From assembly GCF_040938485.1 (NCBI RefSeq), contig NW_027272008.1, forward strand, positions 124,001 to 188,000: a DNA stretch of 64,000 bases, in the 5' to 3' direction. The position numbers and the translations under genes were made by a program. Below are positions 39,601 to 60,800 of the stretch, in pieces. Source of the DNA: Diadema antillarum. Lineage: Eukaryota. The notes beneath the pieces were generated by a model, which saw nothing but the letters and a program-made list of their open reading frames with translations, did no database searches and was not told the origin of the DNA. Within the stretch, counting starts at the first letter, position 1; the number at the start of each line of letters is the position of its first letter.

Positions 39601-40018
39601 TCNNNNNNNNNNNNNNNNNNNNNNNNNNNNNNNNNNNNNNNNNNNNNNNNNNNNNNNNNNNNNNNNNNNNNNNNNNNNNNNNNNNNNNNNNNNNNNNNNN
39701 NNNNNNNNNNNNNNNNNNNNNNNNNNNNNNNNNNNNNNNNNNNNNNNNNNNNNNNNNNNNNNNNNNNNNNNNNNNNNNNNNNNNNNNNNNNNNATAGTAA
39801 TGCATTTACCGTCTAAGTGCTCCTCTCTCCACCTCTGTCTCTCCACTCTCTCTTGACCCCCTACAGGTGACATTCTCATAATGGACAACCATCGTGTGTT
39901 GCATGGTCGGGAGGCGTTCACCATGAAATCCGGCTCTTCTCGCCACTTGGAGGGAGGGTATTTGGACTGGGATGCCGTCTTGTCAAAGATGAGAGTCCTA
40001 GGACAGAACGTCGAGTGA
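30656..40018 (+). CDS. BBOX1: Gamma-butyrobetaine dioxygenase-like Fe(II)/2OG oxygenase, 519 aa, 6 exons
   Basis: Exons 30656-31276, 34498-34808, 35912-36017, 37247-37449, 37973-38139, 39867-40018 (1560 nt, in frame; exon 5 acceptor is the weakest). Zn motif WLRDNCRCNEC plus DGHVSHY; Fe ligands HTD and RVLHGR; GGENTLVDGF; C-terminal RHLEGGYLDWD. Confidence 0.88.
33050..33480 (-). mobile_element. Possible decayed LINE ORF2 3' fragment in BBOX intron 1
   Basis: Broken minus-strand translations resemble LINE C-terminal motifs (RRKLFALFR; LCGHE; TVH...CPRY); no continuous frame. Confidence 0.25.
34089..34290 (+). mobile_element. tRNA-derived SINE
   Basis: GGCGCTGTAGTGGCTCAGTGG (A box), GATTCGAGTCCC (B box), A-rich (AAAAC/AAATC)n tail. 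Confidence 0.65.
38462..38578. mobile_element. ~120-bp Harbinger-like MITE (same family as 55403-55519)
   Basis: Ends TTTTGATAAAACGGGGCC|CAG; interior is the reverse complement of the 55403 copy. Confidence 0.55.
39176..39578. mobile_element. TTAA MITE family copy 4 (diverged), in BBOX intron 5
   Basis: AGGAAAGGTACAGTTTTGATTGAG...CTCAACCAATACTATACAATACCT; central GGTGGGACCCACA. Confidence 0.6.
39603..39793. other. Assembly gap (191 N)
   Basis: N run. Confidence 1.
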
Positions 40019-42971: not shown

Positions 42972-44300
42972 AGTCAATAAAGTCAATGTTCAGCATTGTT
43001 AGATATGCAAAATGTGAACAATAGTTGTACGGTAATAAAATATTGCTTCTAGACTAAACCCTCCACAGTTATGGTATAGTGAGAAAAATAGTGATATATC
43101 CTTATATCTTAGGTTCTGTTGTAATTTTTTTGGAATGGTAGGATCTAGGATGTATTGGGATACAACTGACCTACACATATGCATCAAATGTGATAACTCG
43201 AACATTTTTTAAATCACTGTTCCCAATGGTATATGGCACTTTTAAACTTTGCAAACATGTCCACAAATAATGAGCAGAAACAAGGTCATTCGGACCAACA
43301 GGCATAATGATTTTTAAATTCACTGGGATAAGCATCTGTAATGTAATGATTATTCATGAGATACCTATAAATACTGCTTGCCAGCACATCCACCTGACAG
43401 CAAAAGTGGTATTTGGCAATATCAATAGAAAGAGATTGTCAATACATTCAATGCAAAATAATGAAATGGATGCTTCCCAAGTGTAAATTGACGGATCGTT
43501 CTGCTCATCTGGTCTACGCAACTCTATTCTTTGTTTGAACAGGATTGTGAATCCCATAAATTGTTATGTAAAGCTTATGCATTATGTCGCTCTAAAACGA
43601 GTTAAGTGCCCCTAACCGACTGAGAAAAGAGAAAGGTCATTCGTGCCAATGCGCCCATGAGCTAACTCCGAACTAGCTTATTAATCAATCACAAGTTGTT
43701 TGCTGCTCTCTACTGACTTAAATTTTGCAAAGCTGAGATTTCCCTACTCCTTGCCCGTTTTGGCTTAAACTTGCAGTGGTTAATTCGAACATATCAGACA
43801 TTTGAATAAGAATTACTTCAGATTAAGGTATTGGTTCCCTTTAATTCACTTTTTTTCTGCTTGATTGTAAAGATTTCATAGAAATTGTGTCTCTGAAATT
43901 GACAATATTTTTCGTGACTCGGCAGCCATCTTGTTTATGCAAATTACTTCCCAGCTGCGTTTGTGCATTTCCCTTTGATGCGGTTTTCGAGATTTGTACA
44001 TTTTCATTTACGTTTACATTTCCGGGCCTTTGTACTGCATCCCGGTTCCACAGACCGATCCCTGGCAACTGCCTAATGCCATGAAGTAATTTTATAGTAA
44101 ACGACAACTGCTGTTGTGAGCTGACTTGGTATTGGAAATGTTACGGTCCCACCCCCCCCCCCCCCCATCTCAAGTGGTCATCTATATATCGCATGCTCGT
44201 TCCCAATTCTTTGGAAAAGGGGTATATAAAATCCCGAAAATTCCTTCAAATATGACATCTTTCATTATTTTCCCCCGAAATATTTTCTAATTAGAAGTTT

Positions 44301-44604: not shown

Positions 44605-45385
44605 CCCTAACTTACCTGGGGGGGGGGGGGGGACATAATGCCCCCCCCCCCCCTCGACGAATTCCGCGACCATTCCGGCGCGCAAAATTTTTTGACCGCG
44701 CCACTCGCTGACTTTTTACTTTCAAGTCTCGCGCAACTTTTGAGACCAAATTTGTTGCGCCCGGGCATACCGTTCCGAAGCCACTCCCATTCAAAAATTT
44801 TTCGTCAACCCAAAATTGCTCAAAAACGTGATTTTGTGTACAAAATCAATACAAATTGTGTTTTTTCAATTAATTCATATAAAGATTCATATTTCTAATT
44901 TTAATGGCTGAAATCAATTTATATTAGTATAATTATGCTTCAAAAATGTGTATGACAAATTCTGCTGAAAAAACAACAAAAACAAAAGCTCGAAGAAACA
45001 AAGAAATATATTAAAAATTGATAAAACAATAAAAAACATAAGAAATTAATTTTGATACAGATTTTTTTTTACGCACAAATGTTCAGAATGTCACTAGGAA
45101 TTTTTACATAAAAAAATCCGCATTCCATAAGCTTTTAAAAGCCAATTACAGACGAAAATGAGGGGTTTTTTGCATATATTTGAATAATTAATTAATTTAA
45201 AATAGAAAATGCAAATCTTTTGAACATTTAACTGAATAATCTGGTAAATTACATCCGGCTTTATGTTCATGCAAAATTTTGCGGCGATCGCGTGATCAAC
45301 GGCCGAGATCTGAAGGGGGGCCATGTAATGCCCCCCCCCCCCCCCCCAGGAATTCAAGCTCGCTAAATAGCCCAGGTAAGTTAGG
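44605..45385. mobile_element. piggyBac-like non-autonomous element ~300 bp upstream of the GBA copy B start codon
   Basis: TTAA|CCCTAACTTACCTGGG ... CCCAGGTAAGTTAGG|TTAA. Confidence 0.7.
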
Positions 45386-45692: not shown

Positions 45693-48600
45693 ATGATGGA
45701 ATCGGGGAATACAGAGTCCATCAGATTTGTCTTTTATCGTATTTGTTTTCTCGTTCTTCTCTGTGCGGCCGTTCTCAAAAAGACCGGAGCTGCAAGGGAC
45801 ATCAAAGTCGGTAAGTACACATTATACGTTTTAATTGGTCCTACCTATAGGCCTACTTCCGCACATATAGAATCATTGGTGGTCGTGGAAAATGTCAGCA
45901 ACCTGTGTTTCTATGTATTCCAAATGGCTAATGGAGCAATGGAGGTAAGGCAGGGGATTCTAAAAGGGGGAGGCGCAAAGCGAGAGAGCGTATAGCGACC
46001 AAGCCCAAGTGATCGGAGTGAGCGAGGAGGAGGGTGTGGTAGGGATGTAATATATATAACACTGTTGGTCATCGTGCGATTTCATGCAGACTTTAGGTGT
46101 ACTTTTTATATTCATAANNNNNNNNNNNNNNNNNNNNNNNNNNNNNNNNNNNNNNNNNNNNNNNNNNNNNNNNNNNNNNNNNNNNNNNNNNNNNNNNNNN
46201 NNNNNNNNNNNNNNNNNNNNNNNNNNNNNNNNNNNNNNNNNNNNNNNNNNNNNNNNNNNNNNNNNNNNNNNNNNNNNNNNNNNNNNNNNNNNNNNNNNNN
46301 AAGGGGAGCGAGCCAGGTGCGCCCTTCCCCCTTGGATCCGCCACTGGTACGGTGAACACAGGGGCCCGTATTCTGCTAAAAACTTAGACCCGAGTTTAAA
46401 CCCACGCCTGGGTCTAAAGTGGGTTTTTGAGGTTTAAACCTGGGTTTAAACCACCAGTTTAGACCCAGGTTTAAACCCAAGTTTAATTTGTATTCTACTA
46501 AGTCCAGCTGTGGTCTAAATTGGGTTTAAATTAAACCTACCCAGGAGGAGGTTTATTTCGAGTTTAAATCGAGTCTAACGATGACTGGTAAGGGTACCAG
46601 CACACAGATCAATGCCAATGGCACAAAACGAGAGGCTGGCTGGATACGTACAGCAGCTAGCTTGCCGGCCACACGCGTGTACACACGAGATACGCCTACT
46701 ACATACTAGATCCAGGCTAGTACTTGTACACTTAGAAGAGACTCGAGATCTAAATGTCGTAGTTAGTCTAGACTTTACGATGAAAATAACCTGAAGACTA
46801 GACCAAGAACTCAATGCAAGACTAGAGGGTAGGTTGAGCCTGACTGAGGTCGATTTGGCATAACATGCATAGATAGACTAACGTTAACTGTTAGATCGAG
46901 AACCTAGATCGTAGGACTATTACGTTAGGAGTAGGAGTAGGGTCCTACTAACGTTAGTAGAACCTATTCGAATAGCTAGAATACATTATTGTAACGTTAG
47001 GACTAATGTTAGATCTAAAGTTAGGTTAGTGTGGTAGGTAAAATCTACTTCTAACGTTATTATCGAGACAGGGTTGATATAGTCTAGGCCTAAATTTATT
47101 TCTAAATATTTTAGAATGGTTTCCATTTTTATTAACTGACAATCTTTCTGATGCTTAAGTGCACGCCTTAACAGAAAAGCTTTTATTCAATTTCCTACCT
47201 CAAAGTCCTGGCTTGATCAATCACCAATCCATTCCGAATTCACGATTCAATCGACATAAAATTAAAAGCCATGTCCCATCCATGCAGCGCACACAGCAAC
47301 CGTGCCGCCGGCCGGCGCGGCGCGTTAAATTGGCTCTACTGAGCATTCAAAGCTAGCTAGCCAGAAATAATAGAAAGATTAAACGAGAACTTACCTGTTT
47401 GAAGTTTGATCTTTATTTCATGAGGGAGTTGGAGAAAGAATTCACAGTGAGAGAGCCCGCTCAACGCGCGCGCAGTCATACTTCGTAGCAACAAGATGTG
47501 ACTTCTGTCAGAGTGGAAAGATTGAGAACTTACTTGAAGTTGATCTATACATTTTGTAATAGTATTCATGCCATGGGAAGGGAGAGGAGGGACTGTGAAT
47601 TCTTTCTCCAACTCCCTCATAAAATAAAGATCAAACTTCAAACAGGTAAGTTCTCGTTTAATCTTTCTATTTTATTTCGTGAGTTTACGCAAGAACTCAC
47701 AGTGAGATTTTGTAGCACAGAAGTCACATTTGTTCCAACTGAACAAACTCAAGCATGCACAATGGCAAGCAAAATGTAAGCTCAAATTACCTTGGTCTGA
47801 GGTCATTATTCCCTCACAATGAGTTGTGACAGGCACTGTCCCTCTTCTTGTAGAGGTTTGTCGTAGAATTTACGGAATGTTCGTTCTTTTGACCAGCCTG
47901 CTTTTGCGAGGATCAGAGGAATAGGTGCATCCGCCCTGTTTGCTGCTGAGCTAGATGCTGCTCGGGTTGAATGTGCACTGAACATTGTGGTGTCAATGCC
48001 AGCGCCAGTCATGATTTCTTTGATCCATCGAGAAATTGTCTGTGCCGTTACTCTCTTGAAAGGCTTGCGAAAACTAATGAAGAGATGACTTTCCTCTCCT
48101 CGGATCTCTTTGGTTCTCCGAAGGTAGGCCTTAATGTATGTAACTACACACAAACGTCTGTCTGGGGGGTACGCTTTCAAAAGTACGTCCAATCCAAAAT
48201 TCCCAGGTCTAGACTGCTTAAGATGTTCATTAACTTTGAATGACACCATAGATTGTTTGAGAATCATGCTGTCTAGATTCAGGCAATGCAAAGTCTGTAC
48301 CCTCTGGGTGGATATCAAGGCCAGTAACATGCACAGCTTCATCGTTAATTGCTTCAAGCTAAGCGAGTTAGCGGGAGCTAGACTTCTCAAATATCTAAAA
48401 ACAATATTCACGTCCCAAATTTCCGAATACCGCGGCCTTGGGGGCCTGAGCTGGAACACACCTCTCATAAAACGAGAGAGAAGCGGATGAGTGCTGACAG
48501 TAAATTGTTCATCCTCTAACACTAGAAAGGTAGCAAGTGCACTCCGTGCTGAGTTAATAGCTGAATAGCTCAAGTTCTCTTCATAAAACATGTGTGTAAA

Positions 48601-51600
48601 AAACTCCAAAACAAAATTAATCTTGGCATGAAGGTGACTTTCCTTCTTAAGTGTACAAAACTTTCTCCATTTCCTTATATATGTACAATATTGTCTTTGG
48701 GTTGATGCCCTCCAAGATGCTGCCAAGATGTCCACCGTTCTGCTGCTCATGCCAGAGTTCTCGAACGGCAGCTTCAAAACCTGCAACATAACAGATCAAG
48801 GCAAGCGTGTAAAGGGTGCGGTTCCCCAGATACTGGTTGCGTAATCAAATTCCTGTGTCTAGGAATTAAGAGTGGTTCATCTTTAAGCATTCTCCTCATG
48901 CGAGGAAACCACGCTTGCGTAGGCCAGTTTGGGACAATCAAGAGACCATGTGCCTTGTCGTTTTCTATTTTTTGGAGACATTTGGGGATGAGGCAGAAAG
49001 GAGGGAATGCGTAGAAATACAGATCACCCCAATTCAGAGTGAATGCATCCACAGAAACCGCATCTGGGTCAGGCAGCCACGTAACGTACGCAGGCAGCTG
49101 CTTATTGAGTCTGGACGCGAAAAGATCAATTTGGGGAGTACCACATTTCTTAGTGATATCAGTAAAAACTTTCTTATTCAGCATCCATTCTGTTCTGTCA
49201 TTAAAATGACGAGATCTCCTGTCTGCTTCTGTATTGTCACGACCTGGTAAATAGGCTGCTGTGATCCAGATATTCCTTTCCTTACACCAAACCCAAATGT
49301 CTCGTGCTGCCCTGTCGCAGGCTCGAGATTTAATGCCTCCCATATTGTTCAGGTAGGCTACAGCTGTTGTGTTGTCAGTTCTAATGAGCACATGTGTATC
49401 ATGCAGGTGGCCGCAAAATGACTTCAAACCAAGCCCTGCAGCTAAGATTTCAAGATAGTTGATTTCATTGTTTAGAGCATGCACTATCTCCTGATCATCC
49501 CATCTACCGCCAGTTTCACTGCTTAAATCAGTGGCACCCCATCCTTGCCCACTGGCGTCAGTACGTAGCTCTAAAGCTGGCCGATCTCGACTAATTGGTG
49601 CCGACTGGCAGTGAATGTTATTGAACCACCACATTAACTCCTGTTTAGAAGCTTCAGACAAATTCATAGGTCGATCAAAATGCCCTTTGCTTGATTTTAG
49701 TGCAAGAATTTTGTCTCTTTCTAGGTTACGATAGAAGAGGGGGCCATATTGAATAGCAGGGAAAGTAGCAATCAGTTTCCCAATGACCTGCGCCACCTGC
49801 CTGATAGTAGGGTTTTGTTTCCCTAGCAATTCCGCACATACTGCCCTGATATTTTGACATTTCTCATGCGGGAGCGTTATAGTCATGCTTTCCGAATCCA
49901 AGATAAACCCCAAAAATTGGAGCCGTTGCTGAGGCTCTAGGATAGATTTCTCTGAATGAATGACAAAACCAAGGTCAGAGAGCAGTTTTGTGGTTGCTTG
50001 CACCGCTTCTAGTGCTTGTGATTCAGTTTCACCGATTATGAGAGTGTCATCTAAATACCCCACAACCAGGTGGCCTGCCTGTCGCAGCTTTGCGAACACC
50101 GGCTTCATAAGCTTTGTGAAGAGCCTAGGCGCTGTACTAAGGCCATTGGGGAGTACCTTAAATTGCCAACATTTCTCATGCCAGACAAATCTCAAATACT
50201 TGCGATATGAGGGGTGAACAGGGACAGAGTAGTAGGCATCTCGAAGGTCGATTGAGGCAAGGTAACAACCAGGGGAAATTAGGGTTGTAGCCGTATGGAT
50301 GTTATCCATTTTGAAATGCTGTACATTCAGACTGTCATTGAGGTCCGATAAATCTAAAATTAGGCGTATGTCCCCATTTTTCTTTGGGCGTGTAAAGATA
50401 TTGGACACAAATTCTCCAGCCACATGCTGGCATTCTTCGATTACGCCTTTCTCGGCCAGTTTTCGAATTTCAATGTCAATCTTGCTCTCCTCAGCATTAC
50501 CCACTCTGTAGTGGTAAGGCGGTTTACCTCTGTGAGGTGGGCTATACGCCTCTTGAAATTCAAGTTTGTAACCGCTAATTGCATCAAGTATGAAAGGATC
50601 AGTGGTAATATGATTCCACTGTTTGCTAAAATGCCTCAATCGACCCCCAACGGGCAGGTCTAATGGAACATCTACATGTTCAATGTCAAAAACTGACTGT
50701 ACAGTGTGAGTAGATTGTGTATTTCCACAACAAGAGCTAGGCCTGCAACTTACCTCCTTGGGTAGTGCAGTTACTTTCTCCGTGACACAGTGTTTGGCTT
50801 GGCTGGGGTTGCTGTCGAGTAGCTCTGCCCCCGGTTGTGCGCATGAGCTGGAGGTGGGCGAGTCTGCGTGTGCGGGGCTGAATGTCTGTATCCCCGCTGC
50901 TGCTGGCCTAAAAAAGGCCTGGATGTATCGCCAGCTGCGAGCCAGCCTGCGTTCCGATATTGCTTCCGGCTGAATCCACCGCTGGCCGTGCGCTTGTATG
51001 GGTGGTACGGCTGATGAGTAGATCTCTTAGCCTGGCCTTTAACCACACTAAAGGCAGCCCTATTCTCCTCCTTGAGATCTTTTACACGTTGTCCCAAGTC
51101 ATCACCGAATAGAAACGCGGTCACGGGCGTAGTAGGCTTGCACAGATGTGCGTAAGCAGCGTTCATATCGGGCTTGATCAGCTCCTTTCTCAGGCAATTC
51201 ATCTCGTAATTGGCATTACAGAGTAAAGCGAGTGCGTCCTGTTGCGCCTCGTTCAAGTCAGTAGGAAGAGTTTGTAGGAACGCACACAGCCCGCGGGTAA
51301 GAGATTTCTGTACTCTCTGCAGCTTAACGTCTCTGCTGCGCGTAGTCTGTGTCACATTATCCCAAATCACTGGATTGACTTTAGGGACTAGTAAGTTGGG
51401 GCAATTGCTCGGTGCTGGGTAGTTTGCCGCTGACTCTTCCATAGATTTTTCCTCCAGACAATGGGAGATGAGATAATTCGTAGAATTTGCCAATTCGTCA
51501 TTGATAGGGTCGCCCACACAGGCGGAGACCGCAAATTTTGCAGCAAAGGATGGCACTTGTACTGGCCGCCCCGTGAGCTCTGCGGGTGCGTAACCCGCTG

Positions 51601-54600
51601 CCGCCGCAGGGAAATCGCATTCATCCCCACTGTAGCTGCTGCCGCCGTGGTCGTCGTGCAGCGTACCGCGTGCTTGCGTACTATCGTCTGTAGCACACAC
51701 ATCCATGCCCCCAAACGGCACACCACCGTGGTTTTCTGCGGTACAAGCCGTGCCAACATGGCCGGCACGTAGTTGCTGTTGTTGGATACGAGTAGGCTGA
51801 GACGGCAGTATTTCCATGACCTTTTCAAACATGGATTCGAGTTTAGAAAGGCGGGAAAGCACCTCCGCGTCCGTCTTCTCTTTAGGGGGAGCTGCCTTCT
51901 TACTTAGGCCCGGTTTGGTGGGTTTTTTAAGGGTTTTCCCATTCCCTTCTTTCTTTGTTGGAGCCTTAATACTAGCCGGCGAACACTTGGGTTCATGATG
52001 CACGGCTGTAGTCACCATCGCCACGACAGACTTAGCTGTATGCAGGGCGCTCGTACTAGTGGTGCCACCCACGACAGGCTTAGCTGTATGCTGTGGGGGA
52101 GCGGAAAGCGGAATTTCCATCCCGCGATATCTCGTGAATAAAAATCCACTTCCGAAGCAAAGTCAGCTCTAACTGAGCTATAAATAATAACAATCCACAA
52201 TATGATAAGATATTGCGAAGATGCACAGTTAAAAGGACGAATAAAACTGGATTTAGACTGCGATGAGGGAACTTAGCCCCTCGTGCAAAACGTGCGAAGA
52301 AGCGATATGACTGCGCGCGCGTTGAGCGGGCTCTCTCACTGTGAGTTCTTGCGTAAACTCACGAAATAAAAATAATAGCGCTAAGCGCTACACTTACCAT
52401 GTATCCTGTGATGTGCGTCGCACACGTACACAAACTGCACAGTAATGTACAGTGCTTCACGAGTCGTCACAAGCAAAAATACGGCGGGCCCTTATTCGAC
52501 ATAATATATACCCGTAAAAACTATTCAAAATCCAAGAAAGTCACGCTCATGTGGCTGATACACTGCCAATAATAAATTTAAGTGGATTTGTGGAGAGAAA
52601 AGTACTCAGAGAGGGAGAATTTCTTCTTCCTTAGAGGGCACCATGGTGGCTTGACCCAAGACTACTTCAGGTTTAATTTAAACCCAAAATAGACTTGGGT
52701 TTAACTAAACCTCGCTAGCAGAATACAAAATTAAACCTCGGGTCTAGCTAAACCATAGGTGAGTCTAAAATGGGTTTAAACCTTGGTCTACAGTAGAATA
52801 CGGGCCACTGAATCAAGTTACGGAAGAAATTTACTCCAAAATTGAATCAATTTCGTTTAAAAAAAAGAGAAAAATATTCCTTGGAGAACGGTGAAAAAAA
52901 ATGATCAAAATCGGATGAAAAATAAGGAAATCATGACATTTTTAAATTTCAAAAATTTTCGGAAAACACTTCTTGACCAGTAAAATTAGCAAGTTGATGA
53001 AGTCATCCCTCTCATAATATCTTACTCATTTTATCTATATATACAGAAATGACAAAAATATCATATTTCAGCTGTATAAACGTAAAACTTGTCTTAAAAC
53101 CACCCAAAATAAAAAAAAGAAATTGGTATCGGAATATGCTTTTTACCTGTATTAACTAAATGTAACATTTTTCCGCATTTCATAGATAACAAACACGAAA
53201 ATAATTGTGAGGGCATGTCATCATCAGCTACGGTAGCTTATATGAATATTCATAGAGGACTGGTCAAGATAATTATGTTTTCCGAAAGAAATGTGAAATT
53301 TCAAAATGTCATATCTCCGTTATTTCTCATACGATTTTGTCAGAATTGCAACGTTCTGTAGGGATATATTTTTCTCTCTCTTTAAGAGTTTGTTTATTTT
53401 TTTTTGAGTGGTTTTCCTCTTTAAAGAGCATCCTCTTTCATATCATATTACACCATCTTTCATTTGTTATCATCCTTTGTTGAACTATAGGTTCGCCATC
53501 AGCAAAGCCATGCGTACCCAAAACCTTTCCTGGTTTCCAGGGATTTGTATGTGTCTGTAATGCCACCTATTGTGACACCGTTGCCAACTATAATCCGGTT
53601 CCAAGAGACCAGTTTGTTGTCTACACCTCTAGCAATGCATCGGACCGTCTACGCCAGCAAGTCTTCAGCACATCTAAACAGTCCAATGTAACAGGTCAAG
53701 AAAATAACTCACGTTATTTTTTGTAATCGTTAAATTATCATTTTACAAATCTTGTGTTTATACTTAATTGCAGATGAATCAGCATAGCAGCACAATTCAT
53801 ATTTGTGACATTTCTTGTCACTGTACAACTGGAATTTAATATTTAACTTGTATTCATTAGCACAAGAGCAATAAGCCAGTTTGCTGTTAGCATTGGCTTG
53901 CAATGACATCTGAACCCAGATGTTTTAAAACATGGATTAATGTTTTAAACAGATGAGCAGTTAAAAACACCTAGGCAAAAAGTGGTAGTTTAATTGTATT
54001 AGTGTTGCATGAATGGCCTTTGTTAATTTGGTTGAAAAGAATAATGTATACAATTTGACCTGTATATGCATATAGAACAGTCTCCGGACTGAAGTATGTA
54101 CCGTGCTTAAATACATGAATGAAATGAAATATAAGCCTGAAATGTTTATAACATACGATTATACTTTTCATGACAAAGGATCCAGTTCTTTAATTACCTC
54201 AGTTACAAGTCAATCTCAAGCAGTAAAATGCATCAGAGAGTCAGCAATGACCTCTATCTGTACATGTTCAGATTGTACACTGTAACCGTGAAACCGGTTT
54301 AGAGATTACAATAACTATTTTGAGAAGTTGCATCAATACAAGACCATGTTATTGTCATAGAAATGATGCCCAAATTAAGTGAGGAAACTGTGTAAGTATA
54401 TAGACCTCCATTTCCATATGATAATTATTTCACTTACACTGTGTAAGTTGTGATCACTGATTTAACGGAGAACTTTGCTCCATATTTCACATTAACTTAT
54501 AAGTATCTGAGATTAAAGTTAAAACAAGGAGGTTGCTCACCTACTATTACCTCCGTCAATGGTTGACTTAGTTAAAGGTTTCATGACAGCATGATAAAGA

Positions 54601-57600
54601 GAAGGAAACTTAATTGGTCTATGTTCCTTTCATTTTCCATTATCATATACCTCTCAGTCAGCAAAGTTTGACAATTTCTCAAAATGAACTTCCACAATGT
54701 TGAATAGTGTCTTTTGCATCTAAAAGGTAAAGATAGATTAAAATAATCCTCAGCTGGCTTCGCGAGTTTTCTGTCCTATTGACCTCATGACTGACAACAC
54801 AATCAGTGATAAGGCATGAGCTAGTTCTGCTTTGCAAATATTGGCTGTAGTTCATTGTCTTTTTCTCCAAAGCATACAGGACATGTGATCTTGCAAAGTG
54901 TGTTTCAGTTTTTTGTTTGTTTGTTTTTTTTCACCATACATACAGGGATTCTCTTCTCAGGGTGGTTGTCAATAGCGATAGTAGAAAGGAAAAGAGACGT
55001 AACTACCGTGGTGTTCTCACTGAGTTTGTGATAAGACAGGAAAATGGGGCATCAGATTTCATGGTGCACTTGTAACGCTCGAGAGTTAAACAAGATTTTC
55101 TAACACAATAGGAGAGAACGCATTAGATTTTAGGTATTTAGCCTGGAGCAATCAAATATTGTAGAGGTGCTGCTTTATTCTACACCCATGCTTCTCAATA
55201 ATTTTTAACCCAAGACCCACTTCGGCTCCTACAATTATTTTGAGGCCCGGTTAGATCAATTACAAATCTATAAAGACATCGCGGCCCACATGCAAGAGCT
55301 TCATGGCCCACCAGTGGTCCCTACCTATGGTCCACTGTTTTAAAAACATACTATAGAAACAGCAGTGTTAAGCCTGTGAGTATTGTGTCTGGAGTCGCTC
55401 TGGGCCCCGTTTTATCAAAAGATAAAATCGATTTTAAATTTCCTTACCACGCAGGCTGCCATAGACTTACAGTTGAAATCAAATATATAATCAATGTTAA
55501 CCCTTCACAAAACAGGGCCCTGAACTACTTAAGAACAGGTGTTGCTGGATTTCCCTGACAAAGGAGAAATACAGGTCTATAGTTGTTACGCAGTATTACG
55601 TTTAGACTAATCAAGTAATCAAGTGTAGATATATTTCTGTGTATCTCCGAATATTGACTCAGAGAATTGTGGAGTCAGAGCAATACGGAAATGTCTGGAT
55701 TTCTCATGGCAGAATACATGATCAAAAAAAAGAAAAAGAAAAAAAGAACAAGGCTGCAGGTGTCTCGACCAATCAAGTAAAGAAAGGATGTTTCTGTCCT
55801 TCTGTAAGTTAGGCCAGCTCCATCCCCCCCCCCCTCCCCACCATTAACTTTGGCTTGGGTCAAAATGCCCCAAATTAGGAGATCGTTGCCCAAAGTGCAT
55901 CCAGCATGTAGTCCCCAAGTCTTGAGGTTTTTAAGATTGTTTGCGTCAGATTTTTCTGGCACTACTTGATTATGCAACTGTGTTGCAGTCCATCGTTTAT
56001 TGATAATCCGTCCCTTAATTTTCCTCTTCCCATCCAAACCAGACTTTGGTGCTGTCTTAAGTGTTAACATCAGTCTTCGCTTCCAGTCAGTGTTGGGGTT
56101 TGGTGGAGCCTTTACGGATGCAGCAACCATTAACATCCGCAACCTTTCTACCGGGGCCCAAGAACTGCTTCTGAAGTCCTATTATTCCCAAGATGGTGAA
56201 CTTTCTGTTATTATTGATAGCAGTAGGCAGGGATAGTATTGATATTTGTCTTACTGTGGTATTGTGATATAGTCGTCACAATAGAGATTATTAATTATCA
56301 TTAGTAGCAGTTGTATTTTTTTATAATGATGGGGTAACGATTTATCCTGATAATCTCATTATCATTATGTAATAACTGTTATTTGATCATTTTGCCTCTG
56401 ATGAAGATTCTTCTATAGGATCGAAAGCTCAGACACCTTTTGATTTCATTTCACTGTTATTTTTCTAACATCATTGCTATATTTTGTCATCATAAATATC
56501 TTTTTGTTTGTTGTTGTTGTTGTTTTTGTTTTACTGTTATCATTTAATATCCTCATCATCATACAGTGTTTTTACTTTTCAAGTCTGTGCTAATAGTATT
56601 CTCTTGCCATCAAACAATTCCACAGGCATTGAGTACACCATCGGACGGATCCCCATGGCAAGCTGCGACTTCTCCACCCACGAATACTCCTACGATGACC
56701 ACTCCGGAGATCTCGGTCTCCTCAACTTTTCCCTGGCCAAGGAGGATCTCGTCTTCAAGGTCGATGAGTTCCACTCTCACATTGCTTTAAAATCACTGTC
56801 ACCACTGTTCTTTTATCCTGACCTATCTTCTTAGAACCTGCTTTATCATGTTTAACATTATTATTTGACGAAACATTTCCCAGAGATATCGTCAGGCAAC
56901 TTTAACTGGACGAAATAGAGCGTGGGATATCATACTCAGAGCTTGATCTCTGTGTTTTGACCAAATCTTCACAAGGATTCAGCAACTGAAATAAACTAAG
57001 TATAAACCTCCTATTTATGACCCCTTTATTTTCACGAATAAGGGTGAAACATACCCACAACTGTAACTCGACACCAGACAACCAATGCAGATAACAGTAC
57101 ATTGGACAAGGACGATAATATAGGAGGTTCACATATTTGAGAAATGTATCAGTGCAATTCTGTTACAATACTGCTTGCTTGCGAGTTCACCTGTGTATAA
57201 AGAGTAAGTATGTATGCCTTCTTTTGTTCTGCTTCCTTGAGCCCCAACTCATGCATTCTTATGGTGACCCTGCCATGTCATCATCCTTGTTCATTGCAAT
57301 TTGTTATAAACTTCGAAAATATTCTTATTCTTCATCCCAATTATCAAAAATTCTGAAACTCATCTGTCCTCAGTATAACTAATTGATAGTTGTTAAAATG
57401 TAAAAATCTAAAAATCATCCGGAGGTCTCCTTTAAGATTGCACATACTAGACAACATGATCAAGATACGGCAAGTAGGTACATTCAACAGCATGAAATGT
57501 ACCCACTACAGTACTAAACCGCATCTCTCATTTTTCTATGAAAATAATCTTTCACAAAGTCACTGGGCTATTTTGACCCCTGTTGACCCTGGTTCTATAA

Positions 57601-57868: not shown

Positions 57869-60800
57869 TTTGATGATGCTACAGTTTTATGTTTGTTGAT
57901 GATGTTTGATGATTTCATTCTAGATTTGTATAATGTATCTTTTTATTTTTGTTGTATATGAAGAACCTTCAACCAAAAGACGTTAAATTCATTGAAAAAT
58001 GACGGATTTAGCGCCTTTTGGAAGCAAGCTCTTCATATGCTGTTGTGAGTATACGAGTTGATTCCATGATTATATTACCATATATATGGTTGGCATATGT
58101 CAAATTTTTTTTTATTCTTTATTTATTTTTCTTTTTGGTTTAAAAGAAAAATATCAGTGGGATTGATTCATAATCGAGTTATTTATGTTGAAGAGAGATT
58201 TTGGCAGTATAGATTTAAAAATGGATTTGTTTTGTGTTTTGAATTGTATTTGTATTGTTCATGTTACACCCAGAATGGATTAATTGACGAATGATTTGAA
58301 TGAAATCAATAAATATACAATGGTAAAAAAAAAGAAAATGTGTGTTCTTGGAATTGCACTACAATATATAAAGTTATGAAATCTGTATGTGTTTTGCTTT
58401 TGTAGATGCATTTCTTGACCCGTCGCAATCGGCGGTCATCCGAACCGTCGTATATACCCCGATTTTCGGTCAAAATAAAATATTCGATTTCGAGATTTTC
58501 ATTCATTTCGATTGTGGACATTCCGTTTTATACATATTGTGATTTTTTTTTCAGTTTCGAATTTGATGGAATATTTTTGTAATTATCACTTTTTATAGAG
58601 TTTTGTCATTTCATTTGTTCATTTCCCCATAGGCGCTCGTGTTAAAAAACGCAAACAAAAAAGAGCGCAAACAGTACGCGGTCAACCAAACCGTCATTAT
58701 TATTATATCTGACATATTGACTTGGTGCGAAGTAATGATATGGTAATTAAATATCGTATAATATTGCAGATATCATGTTGTTGAATTTGTGATTAGTAGT
58801 GTGTGTACATCTCATTGTCCATGAAACCTATTGGAATTAACTGTCCCTCGTATACCGTTGCTAACTCACTCTCGGTTTGGGCGAATTGTTTTTAATTGTC
58901 ATTTATCATTGTTTTTGCCATTTTACTAGATTCGTTCAGGAGTATGCAAAGCAGAATGTTTCCCTCTGGGGGCTGACGGTCCAGAACGAACCGATGGACG
59001 GCCTCATTGGAAACTTCTCCTTCCAGGCGATGTACTACAGTGCCAGCATGGAGCGAGACTTTGTCAAGCTGGACCTGGGACCAGCCCTGGAGGCTGCTGG
59101 GTTCCAGGACCTCAAACTGATGATGATGGATGACCAGAGCTTCAAACTGCCCAGCTGGCCCCAGACTGTAAGGATTTCACCCACAAGTCCATGAATAATA
59201 TATTTTCTTTGGGATTTATGTTTCATCTGTAATATCACTGCAAAGTTATTGAATCTTTAATCTATTGCAATGATGTAGGGGAAATTGTGATTCAAGAAGT
59301 GTGTCAAATAAATTAAGTGTAATAACTAAGGAGAGATAACTCTTTATTGTGGGGAGAATTACAGACTTCCTACTTTTGCAGATGTTAACTAAATCTCTCC
59401 CCTCTTATCTATCTTTTCTCTCTCTCTCTCTTTCCCTCTCTTCCTCTCCCTTAACATACATTATACCTTCTTGTGACGAGGGTCGCATAAAAGATATACA
59501 TATAGTGCACGTTGACTCCATAAATCAAGGGATGAAGAGGCGAAATGTTGCCATGGTGTACAACATTTTGGATAGACTATGTCTTTAATATTTTTCAGTT
59601 CTTTCCTTTCTTTTCTTGTCTTTCTCATCACAAGGACATTTCATNNNNNNNNNNNNNNNNNNNNNNNNNNNNNNNNNNNNNNNNNNNNNNNNNNNNNNNN
59701 NNNNNNNNNNNNNNNNNNNNNNNNNNNNNNNNNNNNNNNNNNNNNNNNNNNNNNNNNNNNNNNNNNNNNNNNNNNNNNNNNNNNNNNNNNNNNNNNNNNN
59801 NNNNCCTACGTCTAATATAAATAAGATGGCACATGCAAATAATTGAATGCTCTTCCCTTCGACTCGGCAATTAAACTATGCACTCTATCAGGAGTGCAAG
59901 GAGGGTGCAGGTGGTCCAAAATAAGAGCCCTATCATACCTCTTTCATGTACATAACATAATGATTATTCTACGTGATTGGGCATCTGTCTCTGTCAGTCT
60001 GAGTATCCATTATCACTACCAATGCTGCTTTAGTTCAGTGAAAAATACAAGAGCAATTAGGAATACGGAAAGATACCCTGTGGGCCTGTATAAGGAATTT
60101 TGAGGTCTCTTCGTACAGAGTATTTGCAGCGCACCCTACCAGGAGAACTATTTCAAAGGTACGTATCAAGAGGAACATGTCGTCCATCAGTTATTTGGGG
60201 AAGAAGAAATATGACATCAAGACTATTGAGTCAAGATTATTGTATCTATCATAAAAATGATTGATGTCGTGATTCACATTGCAAGTGCAGAGTCTTGTCA
60301 GGTCCATATCTCAATACATTAAACATTTTCATATGAGAGTTAAACAAGTTTTGTCAAAAACTGATTTGAGAATAGTAGCTTGAATCATGTGAAAAACTTT
60401 CGCTCGCACGAAGAGGGTCGCATTTCCCCCTTCTATACTACTCTCTTCTCTCAGATTCTTGGCGACAAGGATTCAGAGAAGTACCTCTCGGGGATTGCAG
60501 TTCACTGGTATCTAGACAGGTACACCCCCGTGGGTCTAAAGCTGTCAGAAACCCACAGCCTCTTTCCCAACCACTTCATGCTCTACTCGGAGGCGTGCTA
60601 CGGCGCCGCCTTTTCTGACGGGCGAGTGGATTTCGGCAGCTGGTCTCGCGGGGAGGGATACAGCCAGAGCATCATCAACGTGAGTGCAAGCCTTGCTCTG
60701 TATGGGCAGGGATGTCCCTGGTATGGCTAGGGAGGTGGGATGCGAGGGCGCTTTACCCAATATTCACTGATTAATGTGGCAAAAGTAGAGTAGAGAAAGC

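Follow-up and report, generated by a model that had tools for sequence, protein, structure and literature searches.

The pol gene of a DIRS1-like retrotransposon in Diadema antillarum is very probably an optional intron

The pol gene of a DIRS1-like retrotransposon in Diadema antillarum very probably serves as an optional intron, whose removal would join a frameshifted frame at the end of gag to the tyrosine recombinase (YR). The element lies in a window of 64,000 nucleotides (NCBI RefSeq assembly GCF_040938485.1, contig NW_027272008.1, positions 124,001 to 188,000 of the forward strand), whose own numbering is used throughout. In the mechanism that we propose, the DIRS RNA would be alternatively spliced. 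Unspliced RNA would act both as genome and as message for Gag, and a -1 frameshift on it at the heptamer U UUU UUA (50915-50909) would give Gag-Pol. From some of the transcripts, the spliceosome would take out positions 48781-50753, and with them reverse transcriptase (RT), RNase H, and the methyltransferase-like domain. Because the donor lies after the gag stop, Gag could still be made from the spliced RNA, on which ribosomes slipping at the same heptamer would read 52 transframe codons over the junction and into the recombinase, with a Gag-transframe-YR protein of about 780 aa as the outcome. A single frameshift site would then feed two alternative enzyme fusions, and splicing would select which. 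We are highly confident that the pol-spanning region is a real, conserved intron of this lineage. The two-switch scheme as a whole is the likely best explanation of the data, and the window copy itself is probably spliced when expressed; we consider it somewhat probable that frameshifting yields YR fused to Gag. Observed are the sites and phases in the copy itself, their conservation and co-variation in its relatives, and spliced forms in two of these relatives, and from them we infer splicing of this copy, the frameshift, and the Gag-YR fusion.

The element is about 5.0 kb long, runs on the minus strand from 52371 to 47369 with gag, pol, and YR all intact, and is the only DIRS copy in the window. 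Its main parts are as follows.

47369-52371, minus strand: whole DIRS1-like retrotransposon, delimited by terminal and internal repeats, ORFs, and Pfam matches (RVT_1, Phage_integrase, Phage_int_SAM_4)
52306-52371, minus strand: left (5') inverted terminal repeat, in pairs I2 and I3
50771-52120, minus strand: gag ORF, 449 aa, with stop TAA at 50773-50771
48774-51077, minus strand: ORF in the pol frame (-1 to that of gag), open between 51077 and TGA 48776-48774, its start without a usable ATG
47592-47707, minus strand: internal complementary region, in two halves that meet near 47670-47671, each pairing with one end of the element
47369-47480, minus strand: right terminal repeat and its extension, in pairs I1 and I2

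The left repeat is complementary over 55 nt (91%) to 47426-47480 (pair I2) and over 38 nt (100%) to 47670-47707 (pair I3), and the internal complementary region is complementary over 80 nt (99%) to the right end at 47369-47448 (pair I1). The pol frame gives a Pfam match to RVT_1 (1.4e-22), and its methyltransferase-like end gives a weak match to PCIF1_WW (0.0017) and carries FPPF..NWPTQ motifs common to all relatives. The YR ORF (48789-47806, with ATG 48789 and the stop at 47808-47806) overlaps the pol ORF by 16 nt in this copy, and its coding part (48789-47809) matches Phage_integrase (9.8e-9) and Phage_int_SAM_4, a SAM-like N-domain (3.7e-5). The element is thus DIRS1-like in having a tyrosine recombinase for a DDE integrase, an RT/RNase H pol with a methyltransferase-like part, and inverted terminal repeats together with an internal complementary region. 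As for its surroundings, clusters of a palindromic GGTTTAAACC-like motif at 46384-46538 and 52669-52790 bracket the element as inverted repeats (pairs I7, I10, and I11), and its landing site may be inside another repeat or foldback element. The window also holds long G and C homopolymer tracts (44148-44174, 44618-44667, 45315-45358, and 55819-55853), some forming inverted pairs about 670 nt apart, and runs of N at 39603-39793, 46118-46300, and 59645-59804.

The proposed splicing and frameshifting involve the following features, in which a slash marks the border of exon and intron.

50909-50915, minus strand: U UUU UUA, a -1 slippery heptamer read in the frame of gag within the gag/pol overlap; its type and place are kept among families
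50754-50909, minus strand: transframe segment of 52 codons in the pol frame, between slip site and donor, common to Gag-Pol and the predicted Gag-YR
50748-50756, minus strand: 5' splice site GAG/GTAAGT, in which GT occupies 50753-50752 and exon 1 stops at 50754; no donor of the element scores higher
48781-50753, minus strand: predicted optional intron of 1,973 nt, with the entire RT, RNase H, and methyltransferase-like part of pol
48781-48800, minus strand: 3' splice site, a pyrimidine-rich tract and TTGCAG/, with AG at 48782-48781 and exon 2 from 48780; it ranks 1st of 200 AGs
47806-48780, minus strand: exon 2, tyrosine recombinase, 324 codons and stop

A preliminary description of this DNA had placed a donor 17 nt past the gag stop and an acceptor at the start of the YR ORF, and both borders, together with the length of the intron between them, are borne out in the window sequence. 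It was also correct that both sites are in phase 0: the donor codon GAG (50756-50754) is read in the pol (-1) frame, and GTT (48780-48778) belongs to the YR reading frame, so that the junction peptide would begin ..ALPKE/ before the YR residues. Gag is untouched, as had been claimed, its TAA preceding the donor, and the product of about 780 aa expected from frameshifting and splicing follows from the frame arithmetic of 404 + 52 + 324 codons. Using splice-site matrices that are approximate for metazoans and drawn from general knowledge (the ranking tests are independent of their exact values), the donor scores 7.7 bits. A phase-0 GT this strong is absent from every other 67-nt window of the element (p = 0.005, the floor of the test), and only 0.35% of all control windows of this size reach 4.4 bits. 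The acceptor, ..ctgttatgttgcag/GTT, scores 5.4 bits, its rank being taken among the AGs between the donor and the YR stop, and candidate branch-point A residues lie 16-30 nt upstream of its AG. ATG 48789 would be lost with the predicted intron, and the first Met past the junction is ATG 48750-48748. RNA structure after the slippery site is no better than in shuffled sequence (folding z-score -0.34), the sole hairpin being a 6-bp GC hairpin 11 nt downstream.

The preliminary description had proposed that unspliced and spliced RNA together yield both Gag-tethered enzymes, and had looked to related elements for conservation of the position and phase of the two sites. Relatives were gathered via the YR protein, for which 1,132 homologues were found; the loci comprised four from assemblies and 80 from metagenome contigs, with more added later. 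About 25 distinct families share the same layout, with gag in frame 0, pol in -1, and YR in -2. We scanned for donors within 150 nt on either side of each gag stop, in any phase. In 23 of the 25 families, the top donor of the whole element lies 5-38 nt past the gag stop, always in phase 0 of the pol frame. The best donor-like site of the scan is 5-42 nt past the stop in nearly all families, in this phase or as a tandem GTRG/GTRAGT. It outscores every control window of its own element in 22/25 families (combined p 8e-28), and the families that keep it have diverged to 41-64% protein identity; the window Gag, for example, is 42% identical to that of one relative (L001). Among the 23 donors, A is found at -2 in 22, G at -1 in 21, R at +4 and G at +5 in all 23, and T at +6 in 20, whereas nothing is conserved at +7 to +9 or in the residues on either side. 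The residues after the junction site are Val-Ser or Val-Gly, and the Ser codon of the donor motif is AGY in 14/14 cases, compared with 25% of pol Ser codons (p 3e-9). Judged by these patterns, donor conservation reads as a nucleotide-level splice-site profile and not as a protein motif. The short, constant gap between gag stop and donor (2-38 nt in all families) fits three needs, namely a complete Gag, removal of the whole of pol, and a stop near the exon junction; the last may serve evasion of nonsense-mediated decay, which is uncertain for invertebrates. A doubled donor, GTRG/GTRAGT, is present in six families (L007, L009, L019, L022, L025, and L026), with the second GT 4 nt on and out of phase, and could reflect extended pairing with U1 or an alternative donor.

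The acceptor follows the place where the YR frame opens. In the 11 families of the window's clade, TTGCAG/ stands at the third codon of the YR ORF and is the best or near-best AG between the donor and the YR stop, and stops close the YR frame a few codons upstream of it. An AG at this position is found in 11/11 families of this clade versus 0/14 of its sister clade, in which the YR frame is open about 70 codons further, over the end of pol. There, the acceptor lies about 200 nt upstream, within the codons of the pol motif Phe-Pro-Pro-Phe-Ser, which are written as ..ttYccNccNttcag/ or ..ttttag/ and thereby form a pyrimidine tract and an AG in YR phase 0; in five sister-clade families, the TAG that ends the intron doubles as the stop after which the YR frame is open. 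A subgroup, in which the motif is FPPFC or its Ser is written TCC, has its AG 15 nt further on, also in phase. Three acceptor positions are therefore found, all in phase 0, and the top AG of intron and YR combined coincides with the predicted acceptor in 14/25 families, the window's included. The tree places the classes with short and long overlap on the two sides of one split, so the co-variation of acceptor and YR opening counts as one or two events, not 25, and within each clade the acceptor site has been held over long branches. Fisher tests of acceptor class against frame opening overstate independence because of this single split and have descriptive value only. Part of the acceptor conservation could reflect coding, because the window acceptor falls on codons for Cys-Cys-Arg in pol and for Met-Leu-Gln in YR. 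As read from the codons used, conservation of the splice sites appears to go beyond coding needs, the donor-motif Ser always being AGY and FPPFS being written as ..ttcag/. Many loci of both clades have a third acceptor-like site in YR phase 0, at about 321-324 nt before the YR core Met, and its counterpart in the window is near 49110-49125 (codons DLFAS/R), where the YR frame is closed.

When the donor is joined to the class-specific acceptor, each of the 23 clear families has a single frame that stays open between the slippery heptamer and the YR stop, and 22/23 carry U UUU UUA or A AAA AAC at the corresponding place. The scheme of two enzymes tethered to Gag is thus supported by a conserved donor (23/25) and an acceptor that moves with the YR frame in phase 0, by the unbroken frame, by relatives whose YR is without an AUG, and by gene models and a contig in which gag or the transframe peptide is joined to YR.

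These joined forms come from Strongylocentrotus purpuratus and Porites. The S. purpuratus family (L099) belongs to the window's clade with 56% YR identity, and its RefSeq isoforms were found among the members of its 90% cluster, which contains pairs of models of 330 aa (MLQVMRQ, with the AUG inside the intron) and 326 aa (MRQ). XP_030847864.1 (LOC115926751 X1, 367 aa) has a pol-frame transframe peptide joined to YR at the predicted junction and is the exact translation of positions 3001-3120 and 5079-6059 of an S. purpuratus locus (L110), where the homologous intron of 1,958 nt holds pol between a GAG/GTAAGT donor and the acceptor TATGTTGCAG/GTT (..TTGCAG/GTT). XP_011683648.1 (LOC105447380, 706 aa) combines Gag, transframe, and YR in one model. 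These models may have RNA-seq behind them; NCBI is not known to report isoforms without transcript support. The L110 copy (AAGJ06000002.1) lies inside a host gene with FtsJ/Spb1 domains, on the same strand, so its transcripts may partly be host pre-mRNA. In a Porites contig (L085), gag is directly joined to YR at exact GT..AG borders, ..CCTCAG/TTTGCT.., with the pol frame running into YR. The 11 Porites copies of genomic type, eight of which are metagenomic DNA scaffolds, have the borders TAA..CCTCAG/GTAAAT and ..ccacctttcag/TTTGCT. Because the junction shows microhomology over 4 nt (TCAG), deletion at the DNA level would leave an identical sequence there. In further gene models from Diadema, Mytilus, and Exaiptasia (P0059, P0075, and P0095), the acceptor positions seem at the protein level to be the same while the donors differ; they are weak support, because gene finders favour introns that keep the frame.

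For the window copy itself, the joint 50754>48780 was absent among the assembled contigs, which drop rare forms, of four public runs, three of them without a recorded kind. Unspliced contigs in these runs cross the acceptor (47678-50531) and the donor (50533-50782), and their break points do not match those expected from a splice branch in the assembly graph. Among the contigs of the window's clade, none was spliced, all of L001-L004, L097, and L099-L108 being unspliced; the exact-protein look-up misses spliced forms with a different first Met. Contigs of 4,862-4,869 nt with the same ends (L099-L102; runs SRR161564xx) recur in many runs of one study and may represent either the RNA of the element in full length or points where repeat assembly broke off.

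One alternative accepts the intron and has YR translated alone from the spliced RNA, by re-initiation or leaky scanning at ATG 48750 (GMSSRT), not as a Gag fusion. This start would sit 47 nt after the gag stop on spliced RNA, with the junction 10 codons before it and the conserved SWR motif 11 codons after it. In L001 and L099, there is an AUG at codon 2 past the junction, which is where the RefSeq models of 326 aa start. However, L007, L019, L022, L042, L052, and L070 have no AUG from the opening of the YR frame to SWR, and in L005 the only AUG before SWR sits inside the predicted intron, leaving none between acceptor and SWR in any of these seven. YR of such AUG-less relatives cannot start alone, which favours fusion over re-initiation. 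Phase 0 at all three acceptor positions and the open frame from the slip site would also be needless if YR started on its own, and we regard independent translation as unlikely, if a serious competitor.

The splice-like sites could instead be kept for another purpose. A donor-like motif might be held for, e.g., binding of U1 snRNP against premature termination, with no productive splicing and with YR made from unspliced RNA via ATG 48789 or recoding in the 16-nt overlap. The assembled contigs of this genome show only the unspliced form, ATG 48789 does open the YR ORF, and in a plant Copia element (Arabidopsis EVD) U1 binding both promotes splicing and prevents premature termination (PMC5580714). 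Such an account leaves unexplained why the acceptor shifts with the YR frame, the frame-opening TAG, the AUG-less YR genes, the S. purpuratus model, and the gag-YR contig of Porites, and inspection of the window's 16-nt overlap found no X XXY YYZ heptamer in it, against recoding there. We consider it very improbable. A chance origin of both motifs is more doubtful still, to the point of being negligible: one GTAAGT in about 4 kb is to be expected and AG is common, but chance would have had to place them at the same site and in the same phase, under nucleotide-level constraint, in 23 families as diverged as these. We therefore favour the reading of pol as an optional intron with YR reached through the transframe.

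How DIRS elements express their recombinase has so far been open, as the YR ORF overlaps pol and is often without a start codon, and the superfamily overview offers no mechanism. A pol-sized optional intron would account both for YR expression and for the long and short ORF overlaps. It would also predict a Gag-tethered recombinase that is packaged with the RNA, and would be an uncommon example of splicing and frameshifting acting together to select one of two enzymes. More broadly, we lean slightly towards the hypothesis that metazoan DIRS1-like elements, from cnidarians to sea urchins, use one frameshift site and alternative splicing to pick Pol or YR, both as frameshift-limited Gag fusions, and that the 3' border of the intron migrated by about 216 nt at least once, creating the "long ORF overlap". 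There are implications for annotation as well: "uncharacterized proteins" is the label that gene finders will go on giving to such forms, and in repeat libraries pol and YR simply figure as ORFs that overlap.

Expression of a downstream gene from a singly spliced subgenomic RNA is exemplified by the env and accessory mRNAs of retroviruses and by the spliced pol mRNA of foamy viruses. The DIRS element resembles these in that its downstream gene would come from a singly spliced RNA with the acceptor at the end of pol. Retroviruses, however, have their donor before gag, in the leader, and translate the downstream protein from an AUG of its own, whereas the DIRS donor follows gag and the exon joined to it keeps the frame of the gag-pol transframe. 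The 2-kb RNA of Drosophila copia is a spliced subgenomic GAG RNA. In other Ty1/Copia elements, Arabidopsis EVD (PMC5580714) and barley BARE (PMC3735527), the subgenomic GAG RNA likewise arises by alternative splicing. These elements are similar in that the full-length RNA is partly spliced, with the spliced RNA still making Gag and the unspliced RNA acting as genome and Gag-Pol message. Yet their intron is short (around the protease) or their product is Gag alone, while the DIRS intron comprises the entire RT/RNase H/methyltransferase gene and its downstream exon encodes a second enzyme in the frameshifted frame.

Spliced subgenomic RNAs are thus already known for retroviruses and Ty1/Copia (PMC5580714, PMC3735527), and a pol-sized optional intron in DIRS is apparently new, as we found no paper describing one. 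The words "splice" and "intron" are absent from the overview of the DIRS superfamily (PMC3266345), and we found no account of native DIRS splicing in the openly accessible full-text literature; the intron text in PMC7192593, considered as a possible precedent, concerns artificial marker introns. Dictyostelium DIRS-1 and the surveyed DIRS1-like elements share gag, RT/RNase H/methyltransferase, YR, inverted terminal repeats, the internal complementary region, and the pol/YR overlap with the element described here (PMC3266345). About half of the surveyed elements have a long pol/YR overlap (Piednoel et al. 2011; PMC3266345), and the difference between long and short overlap recorded there is explained here by two acceptor positions. 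The closest counterparts are the S. purpuratus models XP_030847864.1 and XP_011683648.1, which share the homologous donor and acceptor, with pol as the intron, and belong to the same clade; they come from another species and family, and are annotated just as uncharacterized proteins.
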